Assembly: GCA_976226885.1 (NCBI GenBank)
Contig: OZ320320.1
Location: 80,352,001-80,416,000 of the forward strand
Direction of reading: 5' to 3'
Origin: Iphione sp. A-MEVVRFRX5
Lineage: Eukaryota
DNA length: 64,000 nt
Shown: positions 20,671 through 64,000 of the stretch, one piece after another
How the letters are laid out: the number at the start of each line of letters is the position of its first letter
Numbering within the stretch: the first letter of the stretch is position 1
Position numbers and translations under genes: made by a program
The notes under the pieces: model-generated
The model's input: only the letters and a program-made list of their open reading frames with translations
The model's database searches: none
What the model was told of the DNA's origin: nothing

Positions 20671-20782
20671 GTAAGTGTCATGGCGGAGGGCGGGGAGGGC
20701 GGGTAGGGCGGGGGTGCTTACATTCATCGATTTCATTGAATCCGACAATAGTTCTAAATGTTTAAAAATGTTGATTTTTCAG

Positions 20783-26782: not shown

Positions 26783-28602
26783 CATGTCCCATCTAATGAG
26801 CAGCACACTACCAGTTGATCTACTGTGGTATAAGATGGTATCTACATAGACCCAGTGAAGAGTGGTCATACCATGGGCATATAGTCATCTCTCCACCAAA
26901 GAGACATAGGCCGTGTTTCCATGAATGTGGTGGTGCAGAGTATGTGTGGGATGCTTTTCTCAAATAAGCAATGTCCATAATTCACCGCACTCCACTGTGG
27001 AGAAATGTGTGGACATCAGTGGGGCATTAATTGGAGATGGCACTAGGAAAATGCTGGCATTAATTTTGAACATCTATTAAAATCTACGGAAGTTGCATAT
27101 CATTAGCATAAACCCACAAAACATTGGCGAGCACACACTTTAATTGAGACAGTCATCATGGTAAGATGTGGAGAGGATACATTAACATTGATTTCTGTGT
27201 GTGACTTGACTCAGTCCTTTCACTCTAATTGGAACACAGGGCCCACAGCGCAGTTTTCTATGGTGTGGTTCTCTCTTGGGTGGTTCTCTTGGCTTACCCC
27301 AGGGATGTAGAGTTCTTCCACGGGTTATGGCTGGTCTTGTGCACATTTGTGTGCACATGCAGTAAGAGCACATTTGGAAACCCAGCCTCTAGGGCGAACC
27401 TCCTCATACTGTTTTAGGCCTGGTTTCCTTACATGGGGCAATGTCTGTATGCAATTTTGTGCATTGCTGTGTGTTATTATCAGATAAAAGGCAATAAGTG
27501 TGGGGTGTTCAATACCTGTGGGAGCTGTCTGTGTGCGATGCTGCCAGGTGCCCATTGTCAAACCGGGTCTGATAATTCACTGCACACACAGCAATGCACT
27601 GCCATTTTTCACGTTTTTTTTTTACTTTTCCTCACTTTTAATATGATTTATTGACATGTCTGCACATGTCAGACCTTTTCCACACTTTTCCCCGTCATTT
27701 TCCCCATTTTTTGCAGCCTTCATTTTTGTGTAGACTTTATCATCAAATTCGTCCTTTTCCACATTTTTTCCCGACATTTTTTGCAACCTTTAACATCAAA
27801 TTCATCATTTTCCCCATCATTTCACACACACAAACGTACAACTTACAGCTAGCACACATATGGAATACGCATGTGTGGGAGATTGCGGGAGAGTGCATGA
27901 ACACAAAAAATGCATTCCAATGCACACTGCTGCTCTCTCCCACAGGTATGGAAACTGAGCCTTATTCTGTTTCTACCATTTGCCGTCCTGTCAAAACCTA
28001 AACACTGCTACTTGGTAGACATATACCATCTGAGAGACAATGTGAAGTTATACATTGCTATATGTCTGTGATGCTTGGAGTTATCCCTATGCAGTCACTG
28101 TTAGGAATACCTGTGTATTGACCAAGGTGCCGTAAACTCAGTACAATATGGTTCAAGGAGGTAACTCGCTCTATTTGCAATCCTGGGTCTAGTCTTTTCT
28201 AGTCTGTAGTGCGGGTAGGGCGCGACTCCGCAACCCTCTCAGTGCTGCCCCCTATTGTATTAGATATGAACTAAATCCACAGGAGAGGGCGCTGCGGTCG
28301 CCACATAGCAAGTCATGACTCATCGCCTCTGACTTGTTATGCATTTCTGGGCCGGATTTTCATTCGACATTGTCTCCATAATTGGATTATGTCACCATTA
28401 AGGTGTATCGATCCTCCATTATTGGTTATTCCAGACTTGGCGACCTTACTTTATCTTTAGTTAGCTTTTTATCGACCGCGTTCGAACTACGACAGAAGTT
28501 GCGAAGACGGACTACTGCGCATGCCCATCACCAGTGGCGCCAATTTTGAACCAATCCTCTCTCTGTTAAGGTCGATTGAGTGTCGTCTGCTTTTGGAACG
28601 TC

Positions 28603-30168
28603 ATGGCGCATATGCTGGGCCTCGCTTGTTCGTCCGGAGCGACTGCTCTTTCACCATCTCCTGTGCAAGCACAACTACGTGCGGAACATGGCTACTATCG
28701 GCAGATTACCCCACCCATCCGTGAGAACGAAGAAGGTGATCTAGAAATGGATTTCCAGGTAAATCTTAAACGATCTCGGGACGAAGCATCACCCGTCACG
28801 CCCGGTCCAAATGGGGTACCCAAGAAGCGCCCTATGCCTTGTAAACCGGACAACCAAGCACCTACATGTCCGATTACTTTGCCGAAAGTTTCCGAGGCTG
28901 CAGTTCCTGTTCAAGCTCGTCCGACAGTTCCTGCTACACCCTCCACCCCTTCGTCAACGGAGGAGACTCGACCGAAAACGGTGTACTCATCGGTGGATGA
29001 CGTGAGTGTTCGTTTGGCGGAAGCCCTTTCCTTGTCTCGTCAACATGACAAAGTGATAAAAAACATTTCTGCCGCAGTCACTAAGCTCAATGCCTCTATG
29101 GGCTCAGTGGACAATTTTCTTAATGAACATGACCAGCAAATTTATAGTCTCCAAGCTGATTTAGAACAGGCTAGACGTCATGTGTCGATTCTGAAGGAGC
29201 ACACGCTCACCCATGAAAAATATTCACGACGCCTCAACTTGATTTTTGATGGTGTTGAAGTATTGCCGAATGAAAATTCTGATACACTGCGAAGGAAGTT
29301 AGAAGACCTTTTTCGAGATGCTCTTCGTATTCGGGATATCGATTTAGATGTCGCACATCGCCTTGGTCCTGATGATGCCAGAATTCGTCCTGCCATTGCT
29401 CGGTTTCGCTCCCTTCAAGACCGAAATTTGGTCTGGTTTCGTCGAGCGGAGTTACGAAAACAACGTCCGCTGCAGATCTGGATTCGTGAGGACGTTCCCG
29501 TTGAACAACGCGATAGGCTTAACCAACTGCATCGTATTATGAGGGTTGCCAGAAATTCAGGGAACTACACCAGTGTCCGTGTCAAAGACTTTACCATAAT
29601 TATTGACGGTATTACATATGAGTATAACATGCTTGATATGTTGCCACAGGAGCTTCGCCCGATTAATTTAGCTACGGTGTCAGATAATGAAATATATGTC
29701 TTTGCAGGTCCTGCCCACCCACTGTCATTAGAGTATCCTATTCCATTGTTAATGGATGATCGTACATTTGATTCTATGCTTCACTTCTTAGTGGTACGTT
29801 ATGCGCAATGTCTACGCTTCCCCTGGATTGTCCGTAAGGCCGACAGCGCAGAGGGACACCGTGCCCTCTTTCAACTGTTGTATCACTTGAGAGCACAGGA
29901 CACTGACGATCGCAACGAGAAGGATATTTTGATTCCGGCACTGCAACACAAGTACACCACTTGCTCTGACTCTAAAAGAATTCTTTTAGAGACTGGTGAT
30001 AAACGACTGGGGTGGGCCAGTACAAACCGTCATTGGGGGATAGGTCTCCCATTCAGTCATGGTACATTGTTGAACGCGAATTCTTGGACTGGTTCTAATG
30101 TATATGGTACTATTTTGATGGAGATCCGGTCACACTTGAATGCGACACCAGATCCGGCCCGGGAATGA
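28603..30168 (+). CDS. LINE A ORF1p (521 aa): disordered N-terminus, coiled coil, L1-type RRM/CTD, C-terminal NADAR-like domain (~29690-30140)
   Basis: RRLNLIFDG, LDVAHRLG..RPAIARF, IWIRED (L1 ORF1 RRM). YVFAGPAHPLS..F.S..H, LLETGDKRLGWAS.NR.WGIG, W.GSNVYGTILMEIR..L (NADAR). Confidence 0.9.
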   Translation: MAHMLGLACSSGATALSPSPVQAQLRAEHGYYRQITPPIRENEEGDLEMDFQVNLKRSRDEASPVTPGPNGVPKKRPMPCKPDNQAPTCPITLPKVSEAAVPVQARPTVPATPSTPSSTEETRPKTVYSSVDDVSVRLAEALSLSRQHDKVIKNISAAVTKLNASMGSVDNFLNEHDQQIYSLQADLEQARRHVSILKEHTLTHEKYSRRLNLIFDGVEVLPNENSDTLRRKLEDLFRDALRIRDIDLDVAHRLGPDDARIRPAIARFRSLQDRNLVWFRRAELRKQRPLQIWIREDVPVEQRDRLNQLHRIMRVARNSGNYTSVRVKDFTIIIDGITYEYNMLDMLPQELRPINLATVSDNEIYVFAGPAHPLSLEYPIPLLMDDRTFDSMLHFLVVRYAQCLRFPWIVRKADSAEGHRALFQLLYHLRAQDTDDRNEKDILIPALQHKYTTCSDSKRILLETGDKRLGWASTNRHWGIGLPFSHGTLLNANSWTGSNVYGTILMEIRSHLNATPDPARE

Positions 30169-34979: not shown

Positions 34980-37900
34980 TCACTGAAGGGACGTAGCGAT
35001 AACCTGTTCAAGAAATGTTCTTTTTTTACCTTTAGACGCGATTGCTTGTAGTCTAAGATTTTGTAAAATTTCGTTTTTCCATGCAGGAAAGCTGACGTCT
35101 CCCTCGTAGAAGGAGTTTCTTTTCATTATAAAGAATTTCGTGAGTATCAAGATTAAGTTCAGGAACCACATATTCGGGGTCTGAGTGAAGATTCCGAAAA
35201 TATATTCATATTTCTGGATCCCTCGTTGAGGAATTGTTACATAAACTTCGCACCAATGTAATACAGCTTCCCAAAGTTCTCTTACTCTCATACATTCAAC
35301 AAAATAGTGAGGTAGATCATCCACCGCTTGACAGTACTGACATTGAATAGTTGAAGTAACTCGGATATTATAGAGGTACTTATTACACGGTATGGTCCTA
35401 TGTAGGACTTTGTATTGAAAAGATTGGTGTTTAGTCGAGACTGTAGCTATAAATGGATTCTTAAATATCTTATCCCATGGGATTTCATCAGGAGGTGAAA
35501 CTCTTTCCTTTGCATACCAAGACCTTATTGCTGTTGGTTTGTTTTTCTCTTGGTTGATTAGTGCCCAGTATATAGTAGCAGCGGCAGATTGAGAGATATC
35601 CAGGTCTTTGTCACCAATTGTTATAATAAGTGCCTCCTCAGTTAGGGGAATGTCCTGCTCTTGAGTCAGGGTTCGGAGGTGATCGGGTAAACAGTTCTTG
35701 AGTAGATTTAGTTGGGGAGAACTAAGTTCAAGACCATATATCTCTCTCATCTGTTCGACTGAATAAAAAGTACCATTCACATCTAAGATGTTGTCAACCA
35801 ATACAATGTGGGAAGCAATACATTTTCTCCTTAGTCTAGAGGGCGGAGAGGGTCTGTTCATATGAGGGCTATTCCATAAAGGTAGAGCTCTGACCCCCAG
35901 GGCTGTTACCGGGGGGTGTTTTGCTTGGGTTTTCCAGATTTTAACAATTTCTAGGTAGAAGGGATGCCGGACCCGTTTCCCTTGTGCCCTTTCAAATTTA
36001 AAGAAGGTAACTGGGTCTTTTCCGCATAATGCGTAGGTTACAAAGTCTTTACCTAAATATTCAGGCTGTACGAGGTCTGCTACTGTTTTCAGACGGTTAG
36101 CTAGTGTTCGAGACCTTAGGGAAGCTAATTTCAGGCCACCCTCTGGGATAGGTTTCTGTAGGGTATTTTTAGCTATTTTAGGTGACCGTTTGTTCCAGAG
36201 GAACGATTGTGTAAATTTGTCGTATATTTTATAAACCTCTTCTGGGACATGGTGGTTGAAGACCAAAAATTGCATGACAGGAAGAACCAAAGTGTTCAGC
36301 ACTGTGATTTTTCCTTTTAGTGATAGGTTCCTATGAGCCCACGTTTGACATATGTCTCTACACACCTGTAGCTTAGGAGGAAAATTCAGATCATAGTTCA
36401 TATGGTCATCAATTGAGTTCGTATACCAGATTCCTAATATCTTAACGTGGTTTCGCCACTGTATTGGGATTGAGGATTCCCCAGTTTTAAAGTTTGTCAC
36501 CGGGAGTCCTATACTCTTCTGGGCATTGATTCTAATACCAGCTGCCTGGCCAAATAGATGTAAGGTTTCAAACAACGAGTCTATTTCCGTTGGACATTGG
36601 ACGAAACAGGTTAGGTCATCAGCGTACTGAACATTGTACAATCTCTCGTTATGGACTGTAACCCCCGGATAGTTGGGGTGATTTTTAATCATTATTGAGA
36701 GAATCTCCACTACCATGTTGAAGAGTAGGGGGGAAGCGGGACACCCCTGGTGTACCCCTTGTCCCAACGTAAAGTATTGGGTTGTGACTCCGTTGTTTAT
36801 GATACAAGCTTCCGAGGTTGAGTAGAGAAGTCTAATTAGGTTGGTAATGTAGGGGCCCATACCAAATGCGTGTAGGGTAAAGAGGAGAAAGTCCCATGAG
36901 ACCCTGTCAAACGCTTGGGCAAAATCAAGGGCGAGGATAGCCCCTTTTATCTTCTCTTGCTGCCAATACCATATTACATCTCGCAGTATTCTATGAATAG
37001 TGGCTATATTTCTCTTTGGCATGAAACCTATTTGTGTGTTGGCTATATAATTAGGTAAGTACCTCCTCAGTTTTTGAGCAATCACAGTAGAAAGGATTTT
37101 ATAATCTACGTTTAACAGGGCTATTGGGCGCCAACTACCAGCTAGTAACGGGTCTTTTCCTGATTTTGGTAGGAGAGTAATTACCGTTTGTCGTTGGGAT
37201 GGGGTAAGAGTGCCTTCCATTATAGCTTGTTGCATCGTTTGGAAGAGTAGTGGGAGGAGTTCTTTCCAGAAGCATGAGTAAAATTCTACTGGCAGCCCGT
37301 CATTCCCCGGGGTTTTTCTCTGATGGAGGTTCTTAAGTGCTTTAGTAAGGTCGAGTTTTGTGAGCGGTGCTTCAAGTGAGTCATAGTCATCTTGAGTGAT
37401 ACGGGGGAGAAGTTGTTCCCAATTTGTGGGACCAAGAAAGGAGAAATCTGGGGGCAGCGGGGAAAAACCCTGACCCTGATATCTTTGCGAAAAGTGGTTA
37501 TATAACTGATCAGTAATCTCTCTTTGAGTCGTAAGAAGAACATTATTGTCAGAATATAATTGAGTAATAGCCCTTTTTTGCACCTTGAGTCTTTCTAGTC
37601 TGAGGAAGTATCTGGAAGGTCTCTCTCCTTCCACGTACCACCTCTCCTTAGAGCCAGCAAGGGAGACACTAGCTTTTTGGAGTTCTATATCCCTAATGAT
37701 ATTTTGAATGTTTTCAAGTCGATGTACTATCGGATCCGAGTCTGGATCTTCAATATTTACTAAGTGTAGTTTCTCATCAAATTCCTTATGAAGGGCCACA
37801 AGAAATTTTCGAGTTTCTTTAGATTTTGACTTTTGGTATTTCCTGGTAAATAGACCAACCGAAAATTTTAGAAAGTCCCAGGCTTTAGTGGGAGTAAGTT

Positions 37901-38324
37901 TTTGATCTAGTGCCTCCTGGTACCATTGTGAGAGAAGTGGCTTTAAGGTTTCACAGTATTCTTGGTTTTCTAACAGAGCTGTGTTGAGCTTCCATAGCCC
38001 TTTACCACGAGGGGGTATGGCAAGATCAAATCTGACCACAATACCGTCGTGGTCCGAGTGGTGACACCTACGGATATAAGTTTTAACAACATGACTAAGA
38101 AGATCAGAAGATACGAATACATAGTCAATTCTGGATGCTCTGGAAAATGAAGAGTTATACCATGTGTACCCTGGAATGCTTGGGTTACTATGCCTCCATG
38201 CATCTTGCAGGTCAAGACATTTAACAAAGTTCAAAAGTCTTTTATCATTGTTGATTCTTGGAGCGGTAGGCATAGACGGCCGTGGTGGGGCTTGTAGCCT
38301 ATCATCAGAATTATTAATTGTCAT
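34980..38324 (-). CDS. LINE B ORF2, 3' part (rest of APE, RT, CCHC)
   Basis: SRIDY, HSDH, KTPGNDG, LDFAQAFD, QGCPASP, YADD, CQYC....HYFVEC. It begins exactly where the 43950 segment stops. Confidence 0.95.
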   Translation of the reverse strand: MTINNSDDRLQAPPRPSMPTAPRINNDKRLLNFVKCLDLQDAWRHSNPSIPGYTWYNSSFSRASRIDYVFVSSDLLSHVVKTYIRRCHHSDHDGIVVRFDLAIPPRGKGLWKLNTALLENQEYCETLKPLLSQWYQEALDQKLTPTKAWDFLKFSVGLFTRKYQKSKSKETRKFLVALHKEFDEKLHLVNIEDPDSDPIVHRLENIQNIIRDIELQKASVSLAGSKERWYVEGERPSRYFLRLERLKVQKRAITQLYSDNNVLLTTQREITDQLYNHFSQRYQGQGFSPLPPDFSFLGPTNWEQLLPRITQDDYDSLEAPLTKLDLTKALKNLHQRKTPGNDGLPVEFYSCFWKELLPLLFQTMQQAIMEGTLTPSQRQTVITLLPKSGKDPLLAGSWRPIALLNVDYKILSTVIAQKLRRYLPNYIANTQIGFMPKRNIATIHRILRDVIWYWQQEKIKGAILALDFAQAFDRVSWDFLLFTLHAFGMGPYITNLIRLLYSTSEACIINNGVTTQYFTLGQGVHQGCPASPLLFNMVVEILSIMIKNHPNYPGVTVHNERLYNVQYADDLTCFVQCPTEIDSLFETLHLFGQAAGIRINAQKSIGLPVTNFKTGESSIPIQWRNHVKILGIWYTNSIDDHMNYDLNFPPKLQVCRDICQTWAHRNLSLKGKITVLNTLVLPVMQFLVFNHHVPEEVYKIYDKFTQSFLWNKRSPKIAKNTLQKPIPEGGLKLASLRSRTLANRLKTVADLVQPEYLGKDFVTYALCGKDPVTFFKFERAQGKRVRHPFYLEIVKIWKTQAKHPPVTALGVRALPLWNSPHMNRPSPPSRLRRKCIASHIVLVDNILDVNGTFYSVEQMREIYGLELSSPQLNLLKNCLPDHLRTLTQEQDIPLTEEALIITIGDKDLDISQSAAATIYWALINQEKNKPTAIRSWYAKERVSPPDEIPWDKIFKNPFIATVSTKHQSFQYKVLHRTIPCNKYLYNIRVTSTIQCQYCQAVDDLPHYFVECMRVRELWEAVLHWCEVYVTIPQRGIQKYEYIFGIFTQTPNMWFLNLILILTKFFIMKRNSFYEGDVSFPAWKNEILQNLRLQAIASKGKKRTFLEQVIATSLQ

Positions 38325-38327
38325 AAC

Positions 38328-38759
38328 CCGTTTCTCTCACCCACAGTCTTCTCACCGATTGCATTTGAAAACATTGTTTTTGAAAATGTGGTTAGTGCGT
38401 TCTACTTTGCTAAGTCGCGCATCTGCGATGATGGGCATGCGCAGAGAAAAATCATTGATAGCCGCTCTGGATTCGAAGCTGCACGAGTTGCTAGTAAAGT
38501 AAAGACTTGTGAAGAATGGGAAAAGGTTTCCGAGGTAATGTTATTTGATATTATCACTGACAAGATGCGCTTGAATCCAAAAGGTGTGCAGAATCTATTA
38601 GAAACTGGCGCATCAAACTTAGTATATGCCGATTATGACTCGCTGTTGGGAAGTGGTTGTAGGTACGATGGCAGTTGTGAAGAGAAAATTGAGTTCAATG
38701 GGCGTAACCTACTGGGCAAATGTTTGATGAAGCTGCGTGAAGAGTTTCTACCGCAATAG
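38328..38759 (+). CDS. LINE D upstream ORF remnant: NADAR/YbiA-like domain, open back to the truncation point
   Basis: PFLSPTVFSPIAFENIVFENVVSAFYFAK..KIIDSRSGFEAARVA..WEKVSEVML..K..NP....LLETG...LVYADYDSLLGSG..F.GRNLLGKCLMKLREEF. This is co-linear with recalled E. coli YbiA motifs. Confidence 0.85.
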   Translation, partial: PFLSPTVFSPIAFENIVFENVVSAFYFAKSRICDDGHAQRKIIDSRSGFEAARVASKVKTCEEWEKVSEVMLFDIITDKMRLNPKGVQNLLETGASNLVYADYDSLLGSGCRYDGSCEEKIEFNGRNLLGKCLMKLREEFLPQ

Positions 38760-38946
38760 GTATGAAGTCAGGTTGTGCGATCAATTGCTACACACTGTAG
38801 GCCAACTTTGTCCGACTCATTTCTTGTTGTACTGATCGCGCTCCACAACCAGATACGGCTCGTATATGTATACTGTGCTCACTACCAGTTTGATGTATTA
38901 CCATAACTGTTTGTTGGGTGATTAAGTGCGCTTAAATAATTTTCAG

Positions 38947-39674
38947 AGTACCGGATCGTCAACCGACGTGGTGTAAACAATGCGCCGAGAACACGTATTT
39001 TGATGATCATGGACTACCGCACTGCGGACGCGGTCCGTTTGATACCAGTCGATGGTCTTCCGCCGATTACTATTCACATTGTGAGAGTGAAGCGCCTGAG
39101 TTATCGTATGATAAAGGCGCATCACCTGTTCTTCGACACTTCCACCTACGACTTGGTTATGATGTCTGTAGGGATGCGCGAAGTGATCAGGAGAGAGGAT
39201 GGCCAGTGGACTGTCTTCCGCCGCTCTGCGCAGGACTACCGGTGGTGCTTGCTACGATACATCGAGCGGTTTACTAGGATGGTTTGTGGACCGCAACGCC
39301 TGGGTGGAAAACTGGTTGTGTGCCCACTGGCCAGTGCTGATCTGTCTCGATTGGAGCCTGACATAATCGACACGACAGAACAACTACTACTGAATACCGT
39401 AGTCAAATTGCACAACGTGATAGTGAGGATGACCTCAGACAGGCTGGGTTTGGCGCAGCCACGACTCGACCTGCCTGTCAACCTTTATAACAATCAGGGC
39501 ATGTCTGTGATGTCGGACCATCTGAAACAAAATGGTGCGAGTGTGACGTGGAGTGTAACGGTAGAGTGGTCATATACTCTGTATGACTTCCTTCGTAACT
39601 ACTTGCAACGCTATGGGAAGCACCTGCCTGACCCATATGTTTTTCCTTCCACTAGTGACTCGGAGGAGGACTGA
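38947..39674 (+). CDS. LINE D second upstream ORF: degenerate SGNH/GDSL esterase-like fold
   Basis: RILMIMDYR (block I-like, Ser replaced by Tyr), YDLVMMSVGMREV (block III G-x-N-D-like), VVCPL, KLHNVI, SDHLKQNG (D-x-x-H-like). Open from 38940, first ATG at 39003. Confidence 0.5.
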
Positions 39675-40578
39675 CGTGTGGGTACGCGCTGTGAGTAACT
39701 CAACCCTATATTATGTGTCCTCTTATTCTTATCTACACACTCCAATTGCGGGACAGATATGGACATTTAGCCAATGGCCCCACAGAGTACGCTTCGAACC
39801 GCATCTTGTTTTTCTCTTCATACCCCTGTGATGCTTTGTAAACAAGGCATCTGAGATTTACTTACCACCCTGTATATATCTCAGCCCGGTAAAAGTATGT
39901 CATGTGTTCTGGATATCATTCCTGGCGTTACCTGTTGCTCTGCTGTGATAATTCTCATATTCTATTCCAGTGATCCGATAAGACAAATATATTTCTCTAA
40001 ATTGAATCGTACAAGAACCTCCACTTATTTGTATTCATTACCGTATTTACATTAACTCTACTGTCTGTACTCCACGACATAATCCTGTGATGTTGTGTAA
40101 GAAGAGAATTGCATGAATCGCACCATGCCTCATTCATTACTGACTAAGACTACATTTTTATGTCCTCGTATTCATTCATGAAACTGGTGCATAGTTTGCA
40201 CATTAGAGTATTCATTAACATCCAGCTAATCCAGAACTTTAAGACATAACCTGGACTATTGATCTACATCCAGATTGTTGTACTGTATTGTATCGTTTGT
40301 TGCACTGTATTATATCGTTTGTGTACTGTATTTGCCGTCCGACTAGCGGAACTGTGTTGTACTTTATGATGTCTGACTTATCGTTATCAAATGACCTGTG
40401 ATTTTCTTATGTATAACCAAACATTTCCAGTACACTCTTCAGGGTTCATTTCCTGCCCATGCTATAAGTGTTTATGACAGTGCCTTGACTTACTGACGAT
40501 AGCCTGACTGCCTCGGGGGGGGTGGTCGCATATAGTCCGTGTGTAGAAGCTTGCTCCCGGTGCAAACTGAATACTACA

Positions 40579-43329
40579 ATGGGGCTAACTGTGGTCTCAT
40601 ACAATATCCGCAGTTTGGGAAAGAAGGTCAGTGAACTGGGACATTTGTTGGCTTGCCACAGCGTGGATGTATGTTGCATCACTGAATCTTGGCTAAACAG
40701 CACTTACCAAGATTCCAGCGTGGCCATTCCTGGGTACGATTTAGTGCGCCAGGATAGAAACACGATCCAGGCCCAAAGAGGAGGGGGTATAGTCATTTAC
40801 TTTAAAAGTCACTTTCAGGTGACAAGGAAATATGACGTGGGGCCGTCGGAATCCGCCTGCGAAATGCTGGGGATTAGACTTAAGGCTGGCAAGAGAAGGC
40901 CAATAGATGTGCTGGCAGTCTATAGACCTCCGGGTGACCCGATAGCTAAGTCAACGCATGCGATTGACCAAGCAGTGAGGGCACTACCCAGACGTGGCCG
41001 AAGTGACAGGATCATCACCGGTGATTTTAATTATCACTTTGGCTGTCCAGGCAGAGTTGGTAATGCTATAGCCGATATATTAGCAGGCCGAGGTTTCAGC
41101 CAGCTGGTAACACAAGCAACAATGATCTCCTCTGACTCTGTCCTAGATCACCTATGGGTTGACTTCACTGGTCACCTTGGTGGCAAGATTATTGAGTGGT
41201 TCTTAAGCGACCACCTGGCGGTATCTGTTACCATCAAAAAAGGAGTACGGTCTAAACAGAAGGAGACCGTAGTAACACGCAAATGGAACCAAGTTGACGT
41301 GATGGCCCTACATGACAAGCTGAGGAGTGAAGCTATAGTAATGGAGGGCTGCCACGAGTCAGCATGGGATAGCTTTGTGGACAAATTACGTGGTGAGTTA
41401 GAGGTTGTTGCCCCTCCAATCACCACGACCCGCAAAGTTGATAGAGACGGATTCACAATGAGCAACGGATTAGCCGAGTTGGCTCGAGATCGCCTATACT
41501 ACTTCCGCAAGTGGAAGAGGTACAGACAGGAGGATGATCATAGGATTTTTAAGCACCTAGACAAGGTGCTAAAATCTGAACTAAGGAAAGAACGGAAATT
41601 CTACTGGACAAGTAGAGCAAACTCAGCTATGGGTGACCCCCGTAAGCTATGGCAGGTGTTAAACCTGGCCTTAGGAAGGGGAGAGACTAAGGTGACTCTA
41701 CCTAGTCTGTCCAAAGAAAATGGTGAAACGGGGGAAAACCTAGCAAATCGCTTTAACACCTACTTCGTTGATGAAGTCCAAAAGCTAGTAAGGGAACCGA
41801 AGAAAACCGTAACTCTTGGCAGGATAAAATCTGAAAGGAGATTTGAGTTGTCTGAGCCGACACCCTGTACCGTGAGACCTCTATTGACCAGCCTGAAACT
41901 ACACAAGTCATCGGGCATAGAGGGAGTACCTATTAAGATCCTGAAACCTCTCTTGGTCCTTTGCATCGACTTCGTTGCCTGGGTGTTCAACTGTATCTAT
42001 CTGTCGGGCCACTACCCAACCTCCTGGAAGGTAGCCCGCGTGACCCCCGTCTTCAAGAAGGGGGACGCTCAGCTAACTTCCAATTACCGCCCAGTTTCAA
42101 TACTACCCGTGCAGGGTAAAGTATTTGAAAGATGGCTAGTACAGGGGGTTACAAAAGAGCTGGAGAGACAATGCTTCCTGAGCCCAAACCAGCACGGTTT
42201 CCGCCGTAATCGTGGAACCGACACCGCGATTGCTAAACTGCTATACGAGACGCATGAAGCCTTGAACAGGGGTTACTACTGCAGCCTGACGCTCTTTGAT
42301 TTCAAAAAGGCGTTCGATTTAGTGTCTCACAGCAGTGTTGTCAGCAGACTCCGGATAGCTGGTGCAGGGCCAAAACTCTGTAGGGTGATGGAGAGCTATC
42401 TCACTGGCAGAAGACAGTATGTCCGCTGCAGTGGCTTTGACTCTGCTGAGCTTCCTGTGATGACTGGAGTGCCGCAGGGGTCAGTGGTTGGCCCCATAGC
42501 TTTCTGTCTGGTGGTAGACACTGTGGTGGACATACTACCTAAAGGGACCTGTGCCGTACTGTACGCGGACGATCTGTCAGTGCTGTGTGTAGCCAGAGAC
42601 CTGATGAGGCTACGCGAGATCACTCTGCGTACAGTCCAGGAAGTAATCAAATGGAGTGGGGACCAGGGATTGGTATTGAGCCTGGCCAAGTGCAACTATA
42701 TGCCATTGGGTAAGGCATCAGGTATTCCCATGGACATTGTAGTCGATGGGACAATCCTTGAGATGGCAGAGGAAGTGAAGCTCTTAGGGTATCACCTAGA
42801 CTCTAAGCTCAAATGTGGGAAAGCAGTGAGGAAAATTAAATCCACCATGTGGGTAGCTGCGTTAAGAATCAGCAGAGCAAAGCGGAACTTACCGCTGGCT
42901 GTGAGAGTCCTATTATTCAAGTCACTAGTGGTCTCCATTTTGCATTACCATGCAGTGTCACTCTATGGCATGTCCCGGGGAGACATGGTAAGACTACAGG
43001 TGCATCTGAATAGGTGTGCCCGTCTATCCATACAGGACGGTGCCCATCTGTCATCAAGGGTGCTCCAGACTAGGTTCGGAATTGAAAGACTTGAATCAAT
43101 GGTAAGCTCGAAAGGGGTGCATGCAATCCACAAGCTAAGCAAGTTGGGGCTGGTTGATAAAGCTGCAGTAACCAACACCAGGATGGGAACAACTCAAAGA
43201 GTAAGGGTTTCCAAACCAAAGAGTAAGTTGTTCTCAGGGTCACTTGCCTACGCGGCAGTGAAGACCTGGAACAGCCTTGACCCTAGTGTCAAGGCTATGG
43301 AGAGGCTGCCAAGGGAGATTGGCGGCTAA
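40579..43329 (+). CDS. LINE D ORF2p (916 aa): APE plus RT, intact
   Basis: SYNIRS, ITESWL, YRPP, GDFN, LDH, SDH; NYRPVSIL, QHGFR, DFKKAFD, GVPQGSVVGP, YADD, C-terminal YAAVKTWNSL. Confidence 0.96.
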   Translation: MGLTVVSYNIRSLGKKVSELGHLLACHSVDVCCITESWLNSTYQDSSVAIPGYDLVRQDRNTIQAQRGGGIVIYFKSHFQVTRKYDVGPSESACEMLGIRLKAGKRRPIDVLAVYRPPGDPIAKSTHAIDQAVRALPRRGRSDRIITGDFNYHFGCPGRVGNAIADILAGRGFSQLVTQATMISSDSVLDHLWVDFTGHLGGKIIEWFLSDHLAVSVTIKKGVRSKQKETVVTRKWNQVDVMALHDKLRSEAIVMEGCHESAWDSFVDKLRGELEVVAPPITTTRKVDRDGFTMSNGLAELARDRLYYFRKWKRYRQEDDHRIFKHLDKVLKSELRKERKFYWTSRANSAMGDPRKLWQVLNLALGRGETKVTLPSLSKENGETGENLANRFNTYFVDEVQKLVREPKKTVTLGRIKSERRFELSEPTPCTVRPLLTSLKLHKSSGIEGVPIKILKPLLVLCIDFVAWVFNCIYLSGHYPTSWKVARVTPVFKKGDAQLTSNYRPVSILPVQGKVFERWLVQGVTKELERQCFLSPNQHGFRRNRGTDTAIAKLLYETHEALNRGYYCSLTLFDFKKAFDLVSHSSVVSRLRIAGAGPKLCRVMESYLTGRRQYVRCSGFDSAELPVMTGVPQGSVVGPIAFCLVVDTVVDILPKGTCAVLYADDLSVLCVARDLMRLREITLRTVQEVIKWSGDQGLVLSLAKCNYMPLGKASGIPMDIVVDGTILEMAEEVKLLGYHLDSKLKCGKAVRKIKSTMWVAALRISRAKRNLPLAVRVLLFKSLVVSILHYHAVSLYGMSRGDMVRLQVHLNRCARLSIQDGAHLSSRVLQTRFGIERLESMVSSKGVHAIHKLSKLGLVDKAAVTNTRMGTTQRVRVSKPKSKLFSGSLAYAAVKTWNSLDPSVKAMERLPREIGG

Positions 43330-43949
43330 TGTGTCTGTAGAAAGGCTAAGTGTGGTTCCCCGGTTGTGACACGGGCACACTACAGGGCTGAGACAGTAGG
43401 GAGCTTAATTAGAAAGGGAGTAACAGTTGTAAGCAGTTGTACTGCTATCTCGGTCTGGTATGGCACTTAGAGTGTGGTAAGGAAATAGCATGTCGATGTG
43501 AGGCACTATGGAGAGAGCATGTATCTGTCAGTCCATAACGAAACTATCGTGTCTGTTGACTACCTCTCCAGTGCACTGTATGGGCAAGTGAACAGTATTA
43601 CAATATGGATTCCTTTGAGTAAATGATACCTATGTCTCATCCTATAACCCAATTTTTCGGATGGGGCTTTGTCAGCCATATATGCGTAAACAGGGTAATG
43701 ATCGGATGACACTGGTTTAGTCCGGGTCAGATGCAGATCTCCACAGCAAGTTATCATAGTTGATGTATTGTGGCAAAAGCTAGCCGTCTCACTGTATCCT
43801 ATATGTGTGCTGTATCCTATATGTGTCCTGTATTCTGTATATGTGTGTTCGTCCACGTTTGAGTCATGTTATGTTATCACACCTATCTCTTGGAAACCTC
43901 TGTACTCATATGGAGATATTGAATAAAATTGAATTGAATTGAATTGAAT

Positions 43950-44393
43950 ATTAAAATCACCTAGAATAATCCAGGGGGCCGGAGTTTGTTGTACGATATA
44001 ACCCTGTATAGACCTTAAAACGTTCGATTGATTAACTGTCGATGACGCCGGAGGGATATATGTCGCCAGTACGTTGTACGTTGCTGCGTTGATAAGTAGT
44101 TCTGCGTGAAGGTAAAGTCCTTCTGGGTCAGGATAGTATGATGTGACAGTAATATTCTCATTGTTGTTAAATAGGATAGAAGTCCCTGCATGATGGGAAG
44201 AGCCATGTGAGAAAAGCCACTGACCCTTCCACTGGGTGGACCAAATGTTTACGTCATCAGGTGTACTATGAGTTTCTTGTAAACAGATCACATCGTATTC
44301 AGTAATGAAACTGAGGATTGCTTTACGCTTATTAACATTGCGTAAGCCCCTAACATTTAAGGTAATGAACGAAACACTTGGTGAACGAGACAT
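43950..44393 (-). CDS. LINE B ORF2, 5' part (148 aa of APE, ending GDFN)
   Basis: TLNVRG, LQETH, YIP, ILGDFN, followed by the D tail. Confidence 0.93.
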
Positions 44394-44489
44394 GGTTAGA
44401 ACAAAGTGGCTGAAACAAAAAGTGGTATTAGTGAGCCCCTAGGTCAACGGACCCAGGGGGGGGCTGAGACCCCTCAGTAGAAGGCCCCT

Positions 44490-46154
44490 TCACTGGGAAG
44501 GGGCAGCAGATCCTTTCGGTGTTCCCGGCTGAGGTGGCTGTGCCGCCTGAGCAGGAGGTTGAGGATTAGGTTGAGGCCCCCGGTTGGCCTCCTCTTCGGC
44601 AGGGTCGTTGTACGGTAGGTTGTCACGAATTTCCATCAGTATACGTCCGTACCAATTGTCTCCCTTCCAGCTGGGGGGTGTGGCAATCTCTGGGTGAGAA
44701 AATGGGAGTCCGATGCCCCATTTTCTATTGATGGTCGCCCAACCGATCGTCTTCTTCCCAGTGAGTCGTAGTTGTTTATGTACCCTCACATCCGATCTGA
44801 ACCGATGTTCTAGGGCCGGGAGGAGAATGTCCTTTTCAAGTGTATCGTCGGGGACAGCTGCTCGTAGGATATACAATTGCTGGAACAACTGCCTGTGGCT
44901 TTCGGGACGAACCGCCTTATTGACGACGGCGCTCTGCTTCTTTTCGAGGGCGTAGGTGATCACAAGATACTGCAAAATAGACTGGAAATTGCCATGTGTC
45001 ATCATTAGATTATATGAGTGTTCGAGTGAGAAAGGGTGCTCAGGGCCCGCAAAGATATACATCTGTCTCGTCTCCACGGTTGCGAGAGTGGCTGGTCTTA
45101 AGAATCTTGGGAGATCGTTCCAATTGTGGTGGTCATATTGAGTATTGCCTAGAAAGAGTGTGAAGTTCTTGATTCTTACACTGGGGAACTGGTTGGAGTT
45201 CTTAGCAGTGCGAGCTATACGCTTGAGGATCTCCAATCTATCACGATGTTCAGTCGCTAGGTCCTCTCTTATCCAGATTGTTTCATGCCTATAATCCTTG
45301 AGCATGGAACGGCGAAACCATACTTCATTTCTTTCTCGGAGAGTACGGAAGCGGGCAATGACTGCTCTATTTCTGCCTCTCTCAATCCCCAGTCTGTGTG
45401 CTACATCTAAGCGAACGTGCGACAAGTTGAGCGCTTCCCCGAAAAGCCTCTCTAGTCGCTTTCTCAGAGAGTCAGCAGTTTCTTCTGGATTTTCTTCAAA
45501 GCCATCAAATATTAAATTGAGACGTCTATCAAACTTCTCTTGAACCAAGGCTAGCTCTCTATGGGTTTCAACCTTCCTGTTAAGAGTTTGAATTTCACAG
45601 TTTGAGCTAAAAATCTGCCTATCGTGTTCTTCTAAGAACTCTTCATACTCTTCTAGCTTTGATTCAAATTTAGTAACAGATGAAGAAATTTTTTCGATAC
45701 TTGCAGACTGGTCATTTGTTTTTTTCCAGAGCGCCGAGATTTTTGTAGTAATGGCGGCCATGTCCGTGTGCGGAGACTTTGGTACTGCGGCTTGTTCGTC
45801 GTCAGGGATATTCGCTGGCTGAGGTTGTTCCCTTGTGAGCTGGCCATCATCTCGTCCTTGATGGTCCTTGTCGTGTTTAACCGGAGTTTTGTTGTTATCG
45901 TTGAAGGTGAGCGCCTTCTTCGCCTGCTGTGTGGATACCGGCGAGTTCGTCAACGTGGTCTGGTCCCTAGTTCTCTTCAAAGATTGCGACTGGTGGTCCA
46001 TTGTTTGGTCCTCCTCGTCCTCTTCGATATCTGAGAAGTCCGTGTCCTTTAGGAGAGAGTATGCATGATCGGAGACGGTGTGACGTTTATATGCTGTGAG
46101 TCGGGAGATATTTTCCCCCCTCGCTTGGTGTGGAGAGCGTAAATTGCCTAGCAT
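44490..46154 (-). CDS. LINE B ORF1p (554 aa): coiled coil, L1-type RRM/CTD, C-terminal NADAR-like domain (~45066-44616)
   Basis: Co-linear with LINE A ORF1: RRLNLIFDG, LDVAHRLG, IWIRED, YIFAGPEHPFS, GWATINRKWGIGLPFSH, W.GDNWYGRILMEIR. Confidence 0.9.
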   Translation of the reverse strand: MLGNLRSPHQARGENISRLTAYKRHTVSDHAYSLLKDTDFSDIEEDEEDQTMDHQSQSLKRTRDQTTLTNSPVSTQQAKKALTFNDNNKTPVKHDKDHQGRDDGQLTREQPQPANIPDDEQAAVPKSPHTDMAAITTKISALWKKTNDQSASIEKISSSVTKFESKLEEYEEFLEEHDRQIFSSNCEIQTLNRKVETHRELALVQEKFDRRLNLIFDGFEENPEETADSLRKRLERLFGEALNLSHVRLDVAHRLGIERGRNRAVIARFRTLRERNEVWFRRSMLKDYRHETIWIREDLATEHRDRLEILKRIARTAKNSNQFPSVRIKNFTLFLGNTQYDHHNWNDLPRFLRPATLATVETRQMYIFAGPEHPFSLEHSYNLMMTHGNFQSILQYLVITYALEKKQSAVVNKAVRPESHRQLFQQLYILRAAVPDDTLEKDILLPALEHRFRSDVRVHKQLRLTGKKTIGWATINRKWGIGLPFSHPEIATPPSWKGDNWYGRILMEIRDNLPYNDPAEEEANRGPQPNPQPPAQAAQPPQPGTPKGSAAPSQ

Positions 46155-46166
46155 CTTCACTTCTGC

Positions 46167-46349
46167 TTACTTAAGACCTCGTGGTGGCTTCGTGTCGAGC
46201 AGGGCGGAAGTGGTGCTGATACGTCTAATGCGCAGGTCAAGCCTGTAACCGGAAACGGCACCCCAGGTGCATGAAGATATCGGTAGATTGACAATTTTGA
46301 CAGGGTCGTATAAGGCCAGTTTGACGAATTTGCTGCTGGTATTACCCAT
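46167..46349 (-). CDS. 60-aa uORF in the LINE B 5' UTR beginning MGNTSSK
   Basis: gcaATGg Kozak context. The stop ends 12 nt before the ORF1 ATG. Confidence 0.35.
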   Translation of the reverse strand: MGNTSSKFVKLALYDPVKIVNLPISSCTWGAVSGYRLDLRIRRISTTSALLDTKPPRGLK

Positions 46350-47051
46350 TGCAATTTCTTGGGATGTTCATCTTACTCCTCGCTTGTTATTTTCGTTTTC
46401 TGGTAGCTTAATACCTGCCTAGGAGGCTATTTTTTCTAGCCCTGAATTAAGGCCGCCATGTGTGTTCGCGACCGGAACCGGATCCCCATCAGAAATAAAC
46501 TTGGCATGTGCCTTTTAAAAAAAAAAAAAAAACTAAATCCACAGCAAGTACTGTTTGCTCGTGTGGGCAAGGTCTAAATATGACCACTATCGTACAGACA
46601 CGATATGCAAAGCAACAATTCTCTGACTGAAATACATTACAATGGAGACATTTATTTGAAATATTGTGTTGAATTAAATTAAAGTCTTGATAAATAATAA
46701 GGGAATATCGAACATGAACATCCTTGCTTAGTACATGTACTATTTCTAAAGTCGCATACTAACATGCGCGTTAGCAGGACTATAGCAGGGTCCCGCAGAA
46801 TGTAATTGCGTTCAGCTGGAAAAGAAAGGGGGCCAGTATTTTATCGACAGCTGATAGATCCAATGCGAACTTTTAATCATCAGTAAATCATGAAACCATG
46901 TATTTTCAATTTATCCATAACAGGTTCAAATAAATATATATGAATATAATGATTCCGCAGAAACGCATCAGTGACCATGCCGGGCAGTGTTTCTTCCCAA
47001 GGTTGAGTGGAAGGGAAGGAATATTTGTGGGTACTCAAAGAAATTAGAAAT

Positions 47052-54162: not shown

Positions 54163-55250
54163 TCATTTGCGTGGAAGAATGTCTTTTCGATAGTGCTTAA
54201 GGAAGCTGGAATCAGACTTCCACATTCCTCGCTGGAGGACATCTTGCAGGGGCATGCCTTGGGCATATGACTTGGAGGCCGACGCCCCTCTGGTGCTGTG
54301 GGCCGAATAGATCGTAGTATCGATCCCAGCTGCTTGCATGACTTGTTTAGCCCACCGTGCTATGGTGGATTGTCCTACGGAACGGTGCGGAGGGATCAGC
54401 GCCACCAGCAATTTCCCCTGTCCCTCTGCAATGTCTCTAGTTCTTTTGAGATACTCTCTAAGGCAACTTATGACACACAAGGCCCTATCTTCTGAGCATG
54501 GACTGAGAACTACCCTATCTGTGCGACGCCCTGGTGCCGAGTGTTTTAATACTGACCCATAGAGGATAGTGACTGACCCATCCGTAGAGAAATGTATGTT
54601 AGACCGTAAGATCTTATACAGCGTCTGAGTGCGGCCGAACGTGGCCAAGAGCAACAACATGTTGAGTTTCAACGTTAGGTCTTTTAGTGTCAGTGTCGAA
54701 ACTGGAGTCCAAGTCCGCAATAAGCCCAAGACCAAGTCTACGTCCCAGGTGTCTGAATAACGGGCACGTGGGGGCGGATGTTAAAAATGCCTCGCAACAT
54801 CCTAGTAGTTAGGTACTGCTGTCCGAAAGTGACCCCCCCCTGCTTAGGCAGGACGACGGAAAGTGCTGACCGAGCGGTATTTATGGTGTTATACCGGGCC
54901 CCTTGAAGGAAAAGTTTGTGTAGAAACAGAAGTCCTTGCTGCGTGGTTGCCCGGCGAGGGTGGTAACCATTTTCTACACAGAAAGTATGCCAACGTTGTA
55001 AGTAAGACCGGTAAATGTTCCTCGTTTTCGGTCGCCAGGAACAGAGAATGTGACGTATGATGGCCGGAGCTGTGGTCAATTCCTGGACGGCTTGTAGCAT
55101 AAGAGTGCCACCACTAGTCTCGAGCTTGCGATGTGAGGCTGGCTGTGAGCCAGTCGTCCCTGAAGGTTGTCTGGTTCGCTTTGGAATTTTAGTAGTGGTC
55201 GGTTGGTTGCTTTCAGAAGGAGGGGGAACCACCATTGTGCGGTCCACCAC
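54163..55250 (-). pseudogene. DIRS tyrosine recombinase (N-terminal SAM-like domain plus catalytic domain), 1-nt frameshift at ~54765
   Basis: WRPKTRNIYRSY..RW, ARSALS, F..RP..P|Y..TWDV, ATFGRTQ (R), AHSTRGAS (H-x-x-R), WKSDSSFLKHY (W, Y). Confidence 0.92.
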
Positions 55251-56979
55251 GGTGCAACGAGGATGACGTTTGCCTGGTCCCTTTGGGCTTTGCGGATGAC
55301 TCGGCCGACCAGGCTGAAAGGTGGAAAAGCATAAGCGTGGTTGAAATTCTGCCAGTCAAGGGAGAAGGCATCGATGAACAAGACGGAGGGGTCTGGCTTC
55401 CAGCTAACGTACTGGGAAGATTTGTGGTTTATACGAGAAGCGAACAAATCCACATCGGGGTGCCCCCACTGTTCTTCTATTCTATCGAAAATGCGTTGGT
55501 TCAATTCCCATTCTAGTTCCAAGTTGAATTCCCTAGAGGCCCTGTCAGCATTAACATTGGACACCCCGGGAATGTGTGTAGCTTGGACCTGTAGGCGCCG
55601 TTCTTCTGCGAACTCCCAGATCGCTAGGGCGACGAGGTTGCATTTGCCCGCTTTAGTGCCTCCCATGTTGTTAATGTACGCCACTGTGGTTGTGTTGTCG
55701 GACATGATGAGGATGTGTGTGTCATGACAGTGTGTACAGAAGGTGCGGAGCCCCAATAGAACTGCTAATAGTTCCAACACATTTATGTGGAAGGTTCTCT
55801 CCGTGTCCGACCAGAGGCCCCCGGTGCACTCGTCCTCTAGGGTCGCTCCCCAACCCGAAAGAGAGGCATCGGTGTATAGAGTTAACGAAGGCGTAGATGG
55901 GGAGAAGCACTTTTGTATGGTGGGTAAACGTGTTTTCCACCATTGTAGCTCATCACGGCATCTGTAGGTCAAAGAGAAAAGGCCTTCGAATTCCCGGGGT
56001 CCCGCTCGGCGCAAGCATTTAATCTTTCTCCTCTCCAAGTGTTTAATGTGTGCCGGTCCATAATATGTTGCTTTGGTTAGATCATTCAAAGACCCGATCA
56101 GTGAAGCTGCGGTTCTAATTGAGCAAGAGTTTTGTTGTAGAAGGGAGGTTATTTTGTGTGACACGCGAGTGACTTTATCTGTGGTGGGAGAGACCGTCTG
56201 TTGTACTGAGTCGATGTTGTAGCCCAAGAACGTGATGTGTTGTGTGGGTTCTGTGTGCAACTTCTGAGTGTTTATGGTGAACCCCAGCGACTGTAATAAA
56301 GCCGAAACTGTCTGTGTGTGCTCCCTAGTTTCGGTAGGTGAGTCACCAATAATAAGTAAGTCATCCAAGTACGCTATGATGTGAATGCCCCGTTCTCTGC
56401 AAGTGGCTAGGACTGGTTTGAGGATCTTCGTGAAAATATACGGGGCGGGGCTGAGGCTGAAGGGAGTACATTGAAACGGAAAAGTTGACCCTGCCACTGA
56501 AAAACCAAATAGTCCCGACTCTCCTCCGCAATGTTCACCGAATGATAAGCGTCCTTTAAGTCAAGGGAGGAGAGGAACGCACCTTTATCAATGGCTAATA
56601 ACGATGATTGAAAAGTTTCCATCTTGAAATGCACAGGGGTCAAGAAAAAATTTAATTTGGATAAGTCAATGATGAGTCTGAAAGTGCCGTTTGGTTTAGG
56701 CCGAAGGAAAATGTTGGAGATGAATCGTGCTTGGTGACTGTGGACGGCAGTGATCACCCCCCTGTTTAGCATGTCTGCTATGGCTTGGTTGGCCGCTTGC
56801 GTCTGTTCGTTGTCAAAATGATATTGACGTGGAACGTCCGCCTGGGTAGGTGTGCTGGTAAAGTGCAATTTAACTCCCCAGACCATCTCCAACATAACCT
56901 CGTAAGAAGTAAGGCTTTCCCATGCTGTTAAAAATGAAGCTATAGTGGGTCGCCACTCAGAATGTAGATCTGTACTCAC
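55076..56979 (-). pseudogene. DIRS pol: RT, RNase H and DAM-like methyltransferase domain, 1-nt frameshift at ~56460
   Basis: FRLIIDLSKLN, LDLKDAY, LP|F.L..AP..FTK, YLDD; YTDAS..GWG, HINVLE, SDNTT, HIPG..N..ADRASR; DLFAS...DAF...W..AYAFPPF. Confidence 0.93.
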
Positions 56980-56981
56980 CC

Positions 56982-62915: not shown

Positions 62916-64000
62916 GGTGGAAATGCGGTAAGTTTCTGGAAGTGGAAAAAGGAAACAATAATTAAGACATGACATGTATGATAGGCCAACTGCTGCGGTG
63001 TTCATGAAAGAAATAACACAATTTTGATATTTACCGTTCACTAGATTAACCTACTATTAATAAACCCATCCGATATCATTGGTTTTGATATATTTCTGCT
63101 GAGAATGCAAAAACTATGACGTATCTTCCTCATTCTTTAAACAGAATATCCAAAGCTCTGTGATGATTCAGCTGTGCTCTTTTGATCATGAAAAGCAGAA
63201 AAGAGACTATCTAAATAGTCTAATATCTTAATTTTAGATTTGTCATTAGTATGATGCCGTAGCTTTAGTAATTGAATTAAAAAAACAATAGGTCAACTTA
63301 ATGGTTAGAGACCGCCGCCTGTTGAAAGGTTCCATTTAATTATGGATGCTGCCGTTTTGTGAGCAACACCCCCTCCATCGACACAGGTCATGGTCATTCC
63401 TATGATTTTAATATATGAAGACCTTTACAGATCGGACATTTCAAAGCTTTTAGGAAAGAGAATGATCTGATGGATGAAAGTTAGAATTCGACTTTCGCAC
63501 AATCCTTTTCGGAGAATACTCCAGATCCTAATGCTTTTCATTGCAATCAAACACATATCTGTACAAACATACCCATACATGTATATCTTAATCATTTAAT
63601 TCCTGAATATTAACGGTTATATTTTGCTAAAGGACATACAAAACTAACTCGAAATTTTAATACTGGGGCTGGCTGCACACCCTGGAACAGAATGAATCTC
63701 TTTCACGGTATTACGTAGCACCCTCGCTATTTCATGCATAAAACAGCTGAAGCACACGTTCTCTCATCTATCAAAACCTCCCTCGGAATTCCTTAGATGT
63801 TTCTCACACCTAAAGTGTAACACATATGTGGCCTCTTTCCTCACATATATTTCTCACATAAAAGTCAGGGTAGTCTCTAAATACACGTTCACATTCTTTC
63901 AGTATTGCAACACCTTACTGCATATAAGGCATAATGATTGAGAACAAGTGAATGTTGCAATGGGTTACTGTATAGGATATTATGCCGGTCTCAGCTACCA

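Follow-up and report, generated by a model that had tools for sequence, protein, structure and literature searches.

A NADAR-fold domain with a replaced active site on ORF1p of a LINE clade in Iphione sp.

Among the enzymes that remove ADP-ribose from DNA and RNA bases, NADARs form the newest class. In the NADAR of P. nicotianae (Pn), the distal ribose of ADP-ribose is held by E43 and E125, and the phosphates are contacted by K50, R79, W89, R93, W133 and D130, with further contacts from K75, Y84 and D86 (PMC11543638); the contact of D130 is water-mediated (PMC11543638; PMC12945103), and K50 is described as essential for ADP-ribose recognition (PMC11543638). The activity of the E. coli C7 NADAR needs E88, K95 and D171, which correspond to Pn E43, K50 and E125, and is abolished by K95A and by D171A or D171N (PMC11543638). 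In SCO5665 of Streptomyces coelicolor, E167 corresponds to Pn E125, and the E167D and E167Q variants are inactive (PMC12945103). Here we analyse a NADAR domain carried by the protein of the first open reading frame (ORF1p) of a long interspersed nuclear element (LINE), referred to as LINE B. The element lies in a stretch of 64,000 nucleotides from Iphione sp. A-MEVVRFRX5 (assembly GCA_976226885.1, contig OZ320320.1, positions 80,352,001 to 80,416,000, forward strand), hereafter the window, which also carries a second LINE with a NADAR domain, LINE A.

The role of NADARs in animals has been described as unclear (PMC11125620). Our literature search found a NADAR in LINE ORF1 mentioned only in one paper, in passing, for Tx1 LINEs of Crassostrea gigas (PMC12477816); that paper is silent on the catalytic residues, and the clade with a dead site that we describe was found in none. 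The following features of the window are needed for the comparison:

44490..46160 (-): LINE B ORF1, an open frame of 556 aa from a GTG codon, 42% identical to LINE A ORF1 (BLASTP, residues 46-523 against 50-530, E 2e-123).
44607..45113 (-): ORF1 aa 350-518, a NADAR-fold domain with a replaced active site, identified by Pfam PF08719, a sequence profile and an AlphaFold2 (AF2) model.
28576..30168 (+): LINE A ORF1, the comparison partner, with its NADAR domain at 29641-30138 and L402, Y409 and W480.

The NADAR fold and its active site

NADAR (PF08719) is the only Pfam domain in LINE B ORF1. It matches aa 384-515 with E 1.5e-9, at 38.7 bits against a cut-off of 35.1, and the match in LINE A ORF1 is somewhat higher (E 1.6e-12, 48.4 bits). 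A single NADAR domain compared by phmmer gave a weak match to the structure 8BAU (E 1.4), while a profile of 43 domains (A1) matched 8BAU with E 6.4e-9 and E. coli YbiA (2B3W) with E 1.5e-4. The AF2 model of the LINE B domain has a predicted local distance difference test score (pLDDT) of 92. It superimposes on 8BAU with Z 17.5 and a root-mean-square deviation (rmsd) of 2.6 over 158 residues, and on 2B3W with Z 14.0, the next match having Z 2.8; the Foldseek E-values for the two structures are 3.9e-7 and 6.2e-5, and a feature search of the ESM Atlas again returned NADAR only. The domain thus belongs to the NADAR fold. In the W-G-x-G loop and the C-terminal helix G-x-N-x-x-G...L...R, residues W132, G133, G135, W149, N153, G156, L159 and R163 (domain numbering, where L396 of LINE B is position 47) are conserved both in the Iphione domains and in the canonical set introduced below.

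To compare the active sites, we used two samples. A protein search of the 1.18-Gb Iphione assembly with LINE B as the query gave 78 scored matches out of 3156 candidates, with 29-100% identity and mostly open. Seventy (70) loci were read, and 60 open frames with a length of at least 450 aa went into the alignment; they contain 58 full-length NADAR domains, all of 165-168 aa. Outside this genome, a word-based protein search with the NADAR region returned no matches, whereas a profile run exhaustively against 1.84 billion representative proteins yielded 9654 matches, of which the best 150 were analysed. The core of LINE B ORF1 is shared by 95 of these 150 proteins, and the two outside NADAR proteins that were checked lie upstream of ORFs for an apurinic/apyrimidinic endonuclease (APE) and reverse transcriptase (RT) on their own contigs. 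As a separate observation, the NADAR profile matches best to abalone proteins that are annotated as host genes and carry up to seven tandem NADAR repeats. Among them are P0012 (Haliotis rubra) and P0001 (Haliotis rufescens XP_048255699.1, 4240 aa); in P0001, L and Y replace the two glutamates in the first repeat, and later repeats keep the glutamates.

Residues of LINE B were placed on Pn NADAR by hidden Markov model (HMM) and MAFFT alignments:

L396, 44973..44975 (-): catalytic glutamate that starts helix 1, Pn E43 and E. coli C7 E88; placement firm.
Y403, 44952..44954 (-): phosphate-binding lysine, Pn K50 and E. coli C7 K95; placement firm.
W474, 44739..44741 (-): catalytic acid that closes the strand before A-S, Pn E125 and SCO5665 E167; placement firm.
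N478, 44727..44729 (-): Pn D130; placement firm.
W481: Pn W133; placement firm.
D438: Pn W89; placement fairly firm.
E442: Pn R93; placement fairly firm.

These replacements are not peculiar to LINE B. All three of E at position 47, K or R at position 54 and E at position 125 are kept in about 115 of the 137 full-length outside domains, and each is absent from all 58 Iphione domains (hereafter the LINE clade). Position by position, the canonical outside domains and the LINE clade compare as follows:

Position 47 (Pn E43): canonical E 100%; LINE clade L 85%, T 10%, I 5%.
Position 54 (Pn K50): canonical K or R; LINE clade Y 62%, L 20%, F 10%.
Position 125 (Pn E125): canonical E 100%; LINE clade W 88%, and only W, F, L or Y (n=58).
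Pn D130 position: canonical ORF1-type set D 53%, N 43%; LINE clade N 60%.
Pn W89 and R93 positions: LINE clade D, N or E, and E, respectively.

With L, Y and W in place of E43, K50 and E125, the known mechanism for hydrolysing ADP-ribosylated bases should therefore be lost, and, as far as aligned residues can tell, a canonical NADAR hydrolase is excluded for the LINE B domain. The pocket itself appears from the alignment to have turned hydrophobic and aromatic, which argues against both the known chemistry and canonical ADP-ribose binding. An initial reading of the window from its letters and translated ORFs (the sequence-only reading) had seen most of this by manual alignment: the pattern S-x-L-[QH]..V..Y is indeed present in both LINEs (S394, L396, Q397, V400 and Y403 in LINE B), as is G-W-A-[ST]-x-N-R-x-W-G (G473 to G482 in LINE B), and both keep W-G-I-G-L-P-F-S-H and G-x-N-x-Y-G-x-I-L-M-E-I-R. 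It had also named the E, K and D of the canonical motifs as the catalytic positions, which is right for E and K. The acid has to be relabelled: it is the E of 'vEAS' (Pn E125), structurally equivalent to D171 of E. coli C7, and not the D of '..D..WG', which is Pn D130. As both acid positions are altered in LINE B (W474 and N478), the conclusion that catalysis was lost survives this correction.

Other positions have changed along with the catalytic ones. In the S-N motif, most members of the LINE clade have lost the N, which 98% of the canonical set carry; also lost are K at domain position 77 (89% in the canonical set), Q107 and N108. Nearly invariant gains are G23, S45, R74, L76, R84 and P137, with G23 and S45 at 100%, to which E93 (93%), H140 (93%) and E/D at position 31 (95%) can be added. 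Two of the new polar residues deserve separate mention:

E380, 45021..45023 (-): conserved acid beside the S-N motif, a candidate relocated acid; E/D in 95% of the LINE clade, H or F in canonical domains.
H489, 44694..44696 (-): conserved histidine of the loop that follows W-G-x-G; LINE clade H 93%, canonical domains D, N or H.

Such residues could belong to a rewired enzyme, a hydrolase or one of another kind, in which E/D380, H489, E442 and possibly H375 would act on a different substrate. The conservation of positions 31, 140, 93, 45 and 23 in the LINE clade only would fit this, and the catalytic residue already varies among NADARs, being Asp in the BC4488-type and His in phage NADARs (PMC11543638). 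Still, we regard a rewired enzyme as unlikely: no NADAR is known in which both acids and the lysine are missing; the change of four polar residues of the pocket to L, Y, W and L/N/P makes it look filled or hydrophobic; and in the LINE clade the four residues on either side of positions 47 and 125 include no conserved acid.

A dead site might also bind ADP-ribose or ADP-ribosylated nucleic acid without cleaving it. Catalytically dead macrodomains act as ADP-ribose readers and provide a precedent. In LINE B, the fold and the W-G-x-G loop with W481 are retained, N478 stands at the D130 position, and the conserved R423 and R433 lie in the helix region that bears K75 and R79 in Pn NADAR. However, the essential K50 is replaced by Y, the charge at the pyrophosphate site is reversed by E at the R93 position, the W89 position is acidic or N, and both ribose-binding glutamates have become hydrophobic. 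Given Y, D and E at the positions of K50, W89 and R93, an ADP-ribose reader is therefore doubtful, and we think it even less probable than a rewired enzyme. Hence, the proposal of the sequence-only reading that the fold is kept as a non-catalytic binder of ADP-ribose, nucleotide or RNA holds in that the hydrolysis residues are gone, and is weakened with respect to ADP-ribose.

Common ancestry and purifying selection

We built a maximum-likelihood tree of the 58 Iphione and 137 outside domains after removing the four trait columns. All 58 Iphione domains fall on one side of a branch with a Shimodaira-Hasegawa-like approximate likelihood ratio test (SH-aLRT) value of 99. Therefore, LINE A and LINE B inherited their substitutions from one ancestor, and the tree shows a single origin of the active-site replacement in the ancestor of a large LINE clade. 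The view that LINE B is a second family that independently retained the same substituted domain has to be given up, since both elements are sister lineages in one old clade of at least 58 lineages.

The alternative is convergence, in which LINE A and LINE B would each have lost the catalytic residues separately and ended up with matching replacements. It draws some support from the recurrence of glutamate loss elsewhere, both in the NADAR of a LINE inserted into LINE B (V and Y, see below) and in the abalone multi-NADAR repeats, and from the 14 state changes that the tree requires overall. Against it, LINE A, LINE B and 56 further lineages with the L, Y/F/L, W pattern form one supported branch even with the trait columns excluded. 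Convergent loss in the two elements is ruled out by this branch, and we leave it only a very small probability.

The Iphione genome also appears to contain the canonical version. The dead-site pattern G-W-A-[ST]-x4-W-G-x-G has 84 genome matches against 6 in the control, and the canonical pattern E-A-[ST]-x-[DN]-x-x-W-G-x-G has 389 against 7; G-E-A-[ST]-x4-W-G-x-G does not rise above chance here, with 10 matches against 5. At least eight of the listed canonical sites are C-terminal, at the end of open frames 527-635 aa long; these frames align with P0136, an outside NADAR protein, over residues ~40-432. Examples in the Iphione assembly are:

C1:162254763-162255800
C2:47922145-47923188
C1:29430833-29431783

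Canonical-motif and dead-site NADARs thus seem to coexist in long ORFs of one genome, the canonical-motif sites having been counted as DNA patterns and located inside matches of the protein search.

To place constraint on the NADAR domain in context, ORF1 was divided into regions. Besides the NADAR domain, these are:

45756..46160 (-): aa 1-135, fast-evolving, gap-rich N-terminus; 19% identity to LINE A.
45525..45755 (-): aa 136-212, putative coiled coil; helix running into the next domain.
45114..45524 (-): aa 213-349, L1-type RNA recognition motif (RRM) plus C-terminal domain (CTD); identified by profile, AF2 model and structural match to human ORF1p.
44493..44606 (-): aa 519-556, P/Q/A-rich C-terminal tail, from the translation.

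The RRM-CTD is the RNA-binding core. A profile of aa 196-352 from 46 relatives (A2) matches human LINE-1 ORF1p (2YKP) with E 0.004, and the AF2 model (pLDDT 88) aligns with the trimer structure of human ORF1p (2YKQ) at Z 13.8 and rmsd 2.9 over 150 of 157 residues, as compared with Z 8 for generic RRMs; for 2YKQ and 2YKP together, 145-152 of the 157 residues are aligned. LINE B ORF1p thus begins with a variable N-terminus, continues with a putative coiled coil and an L1-type RRM-CTD, and ends with the NADAR domain and a P/Q-rich tail. We infer the coiled coil at aa 136-212; the modelled part of this region, aa 197-211, is a helix running into the RRM, and a phmmer comparison of whole ORF1 with PDB returned only chance coiled-coil matches, to the long helix of haemagglutinin HA2 (aa 121-227). 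The N-terminus is disordered, and in the clade the N-terminal regions (aa 1-135) have a mean pairwise identity of 23% with 32% gaps.

Between LINE A and LINE B, the NADAR domains are identical at 84 of 169 positions (50%) with no gaps, which bears out the original estimate of about one half, and the RRM-CTD is similar (70/137, 51%). Identity falls to 21/77 (27%) in the coiled coil and to 24/124 (19%), with gaps, in the N-terminus. The N-termini had been called unalignable; this is true of aa 1-135 only, as LINE B aligns from residue 46 to 523 at the overall identity given above.

Because of saturation at synonymous sites, both between LINE A and LINE B and between LINE B and its nearest relatives other than a nearly identical second copy on contig C22, selection was measured on closer pairs inside the clade. 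For LINE B and these nearest relatives, the proportion of synonymous differences (pS) in the NADAR domain is 0.82-0.85 and that of non-synonymous differences (pN) is 0.085-0.12. In eight informative pairs, dN/dS by the Nei-Gojobori method (NG86) is 0.03-0.16 in the NADAR domain and 0.02-0.15 in the RRM-CTD. Pooling six independent pairs gave:

NADAR: non-synonymous 64/2319, synonymous 187/723, pN/pS 0.108, Fisher p 2e-71.
RRM-CTD: non-synonymous 61/1918, synonymous 177/545, pN/pS 0.098, Fisher p 5.7e-75.
Coiled coil: non-synonymous 34/1088, synonymous 78/299, pN/pS 0.117, Fisher p 1.3e-30.
N-terminus: non-synonymous 105/1659, synonymous 126/486, pN/pS 0.246, Fisher p 2.3e-29.

The NADAR domain is as strongly constrained as the RNA-binding core. 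Conservation extends to the replacement residues (W125 in 88%, L47 in 85%, aromatic or hydrophobic residues at position 54), and the gap fraction in the domain is 0.5% over 1596 pairs. The sequence-only reading had claimed purifying selection and proposed dN/dS per domain across copies as a check; the values, far from 1 in the NADAR domain, agree with that claim.

A functionless remnant carried along by the element would be suggested by the Pfam score, barely above the cut-off, and by the missing active site. Yet the pooled pN/pS equals that of the RRM-CTD, indels are almost absent among lineages with saturated synonymous sites, and the AF2 model is confident. The selection figures and the near-absence of indels rule out a decaying passenger, the least probable of all the explanations that we weighed.

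Possible roles of the remodelled cleft

We consider that the NADAR domain of the LINE clade probably has a non-catalytic, pseudo-enzyme role that is kept by selection, as the residues and their constraint suggest. Under this reading, the ancestor of the clade would have lost NADAR catalysis once, LINE A and LINE B would descend from that ancestor, and the domain would since have been kept almost indel-free under purifying selection. The aromatic-lined cleft (L396, Y403, Y430, W474, W481 and W498) would then serve a non-hydrolytic role needed by retrotransposition, most likely the binding of a nucleobase, nucleic acid or partner protein within the ORF1p-RNA particle. We infer such a role in retrotransposition for the remodelled cleft, and rank the classical ADP-ribose reading below nucleobase, nucleic-acid or partner-protein binding as less likely.

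Several observations weigh against a pseudo-enzyme role or limit its reach. First, the new, nearly invariant polar residues E/D380, E442, H489, R423 and R433 might, from their conservation, mark a different active site or retained phosphate binding. Second, in the stretch of Pn K75 and R79 the hmmalign and MAFFT alignments disagree, so that those contacts may or may not be lost. Third, the net charge of the domain varies in the clade from -3 to +10 (LINE B +7, LINE A -1), so the residue composition gives no clear signal of nucleic-acid binding. Fourth, the 58 sequences were gathered with LINE B as the query, so that the clade is sampled around LINE B and the tree shows common descent of the sampled set, not the full range of the clade. 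Finally, the window copy of LINE B is dead, as its ORF2 is split by an insertion.

A further-reaching possibility, which we regard as speculative and put no higher than the rewired enzyme, is that the LINE clade converted an ADP-ribose-erasing enzyme on ORF1p into a dead but indispensable binding module. Such a module could read modified or unmodified nucleic acid, or could be a decoy for a host ADP-ribosyltransferase or restriction factor. If this were true, then together with sister LINE families that keep the canonical motif it would make a transposon enzyme/pseudo-enzyme pair, and would point to a conflict over nucleic-acid ADP-ribosylation in animals. Whichever role applies, the constrained dead-site LINE clade and the ORFs of 500-635 aa with the canonical NADAR motif offer a natural comparison in one genome. 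They raise the question of whether retrotransposons must erase or recognise ADP-ribose on their own nucleic acids, and of what the NADAR fold is capable of without its catalytic residues.

The LINE B element, its surroundings and known systems

By its ORFs and domain matches, LINE B can be classified as an APE-type, L1/Tx1-like non-LTR (long terminal repeat) retrotransposon. In addition to ORF1, in which the first ATG is codon 3 (46152-46154), the element comprises:

46161..46486 (-): 5' untranslated region (UTR); identity to the C22 copy stops at 46486, which places the 5' end of LINE B near there.
43931..44393 (-): 5' piece of ORF2, start of the AP endonuclease; Pfam Exo_endo_phos 6e-17, aligns to LINE A ORF2 aa 2-152.
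34980..38324 (-): remainder of ORF2 (end of APE, RT, zf-RVT); Pfam matches, 40% identical to LINE A ORF2 aa 182-1246.
38326..43930 (+): another LINE, inserted in LINE B ORF2; Pfam matches, and the C22 copy is continuous across the gap.

The open frame of the AP endonuclease (43869-44393) starts 96 bases 3' of ORF1 on the same strand, and the two pieces of ORF2 together carry the Pfam domains Exo_endo_phos, RVT_1 and zf-RVT. The second copy of LINE B lies on contig C22 of the same assembly (43679806-43684473, locus L002). It is 99.4% identical to the window copy over 43931-46486 and 100% identical over 37368-38325, and it is continuous across the site of the insertion. As the C22 copy is uninterrupted, LINE B spans from about 46486 to beyond 34980, with its endonuclease split by a 5.6-kb insertion. 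ORF1 is open in both copies, which differ across it by one non-synonymous and six synonymous changes.

The inserted LINE has a 5'-truncated NADAR ORF at 38388-38759 (Pfam 6.5e-16), a 224-aa ORF at 39000-39674 without a Pfam match and an APE-RT ORF at 40522-43329. Its NADAR carries V and Y in place of the two glutamates, retains the lysine and shares about 25% identity with each of the other domains; these residues suggest that the glutamates were lost separately in another LINE lineage.

Elsewhere in the window, the following features were seen:

8334-9074 (+): two overlapping ORFs of a repeated peptide unit, roughly '...RESSYCSLW...INPRKFLLQP...', and therefore a tandem DNA repeat.
20217-25924 (+): tyrosine recombinase/DUF3504 ORFs (21333-21980), followed by LTR retrotransposon pol with an rve integrase at 25007-25924.
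54163-58154 (-): a DIRS-like element with a gag-like ORF, RT and RNase H, a Dam-like methyltransferase domain and a tyrosine recombinase.
60594-63041 (-): an 815-aa single-exon ORF for a secretin-family seven-transmembrane (7TM) receptor (7tm_2, 6.3e-24) in a G+C-rich stretch, probably a host gene.

Among known systems, the YbiA-type NADAR hydrolases (8BAU, 2B3W and SCO5665) have the same fold as the LINE B domain and share with it the W-G-x-G and G-x-N-x-x-G...R motifs and S29 of the S-N motif. They stand alone, whereas the LINE B domain is fused to a LINE ORF1p and has L, Y and W for E43, K50 and E125; it also differs from them in having D and E at the W89 and R93 positions and in the loss of the S-N motif N in most members of its clade. 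Dead macrodomain readers resemble the LINE B NADAR in keeping an ADP-ribose-processing fold without catalysis. Unlike LINE B, in which most known ADP-ribose contacts have changed, they keep their ligand-binding residues.

Human LINE-1 ORF1p (2YKO, 2YKP and 2YKQ) has, like LINE B, an RRM-CTD into which the end of a coiled coil leads (putative in LINE B), and its gene is likewise upstream of ORF2. The human protein stops after the CTD, whereas LINE B adds the 169-aa NADAR fold and the P/Q-rich tail. Other ORF1-NADAR LINEs (Tx1 of Crassostrea gigas, PMC12477816, and outside proteins such as P0028 and P0019) share with LINE B the layout of a coiled coil (putative in LINE B), an L1-type core and a C-terminal NADAR, upstream of an APE-RT ORF2. 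The NADARs of these outside ORF1 proteins keep E, K/R and E, with D or N at the D130 position, and the outside domains score 82-123 bits with the Pfam NADAR model, whereas LINE A and LINE B have L, Y and W and score 48 and 39 bits, respectively.

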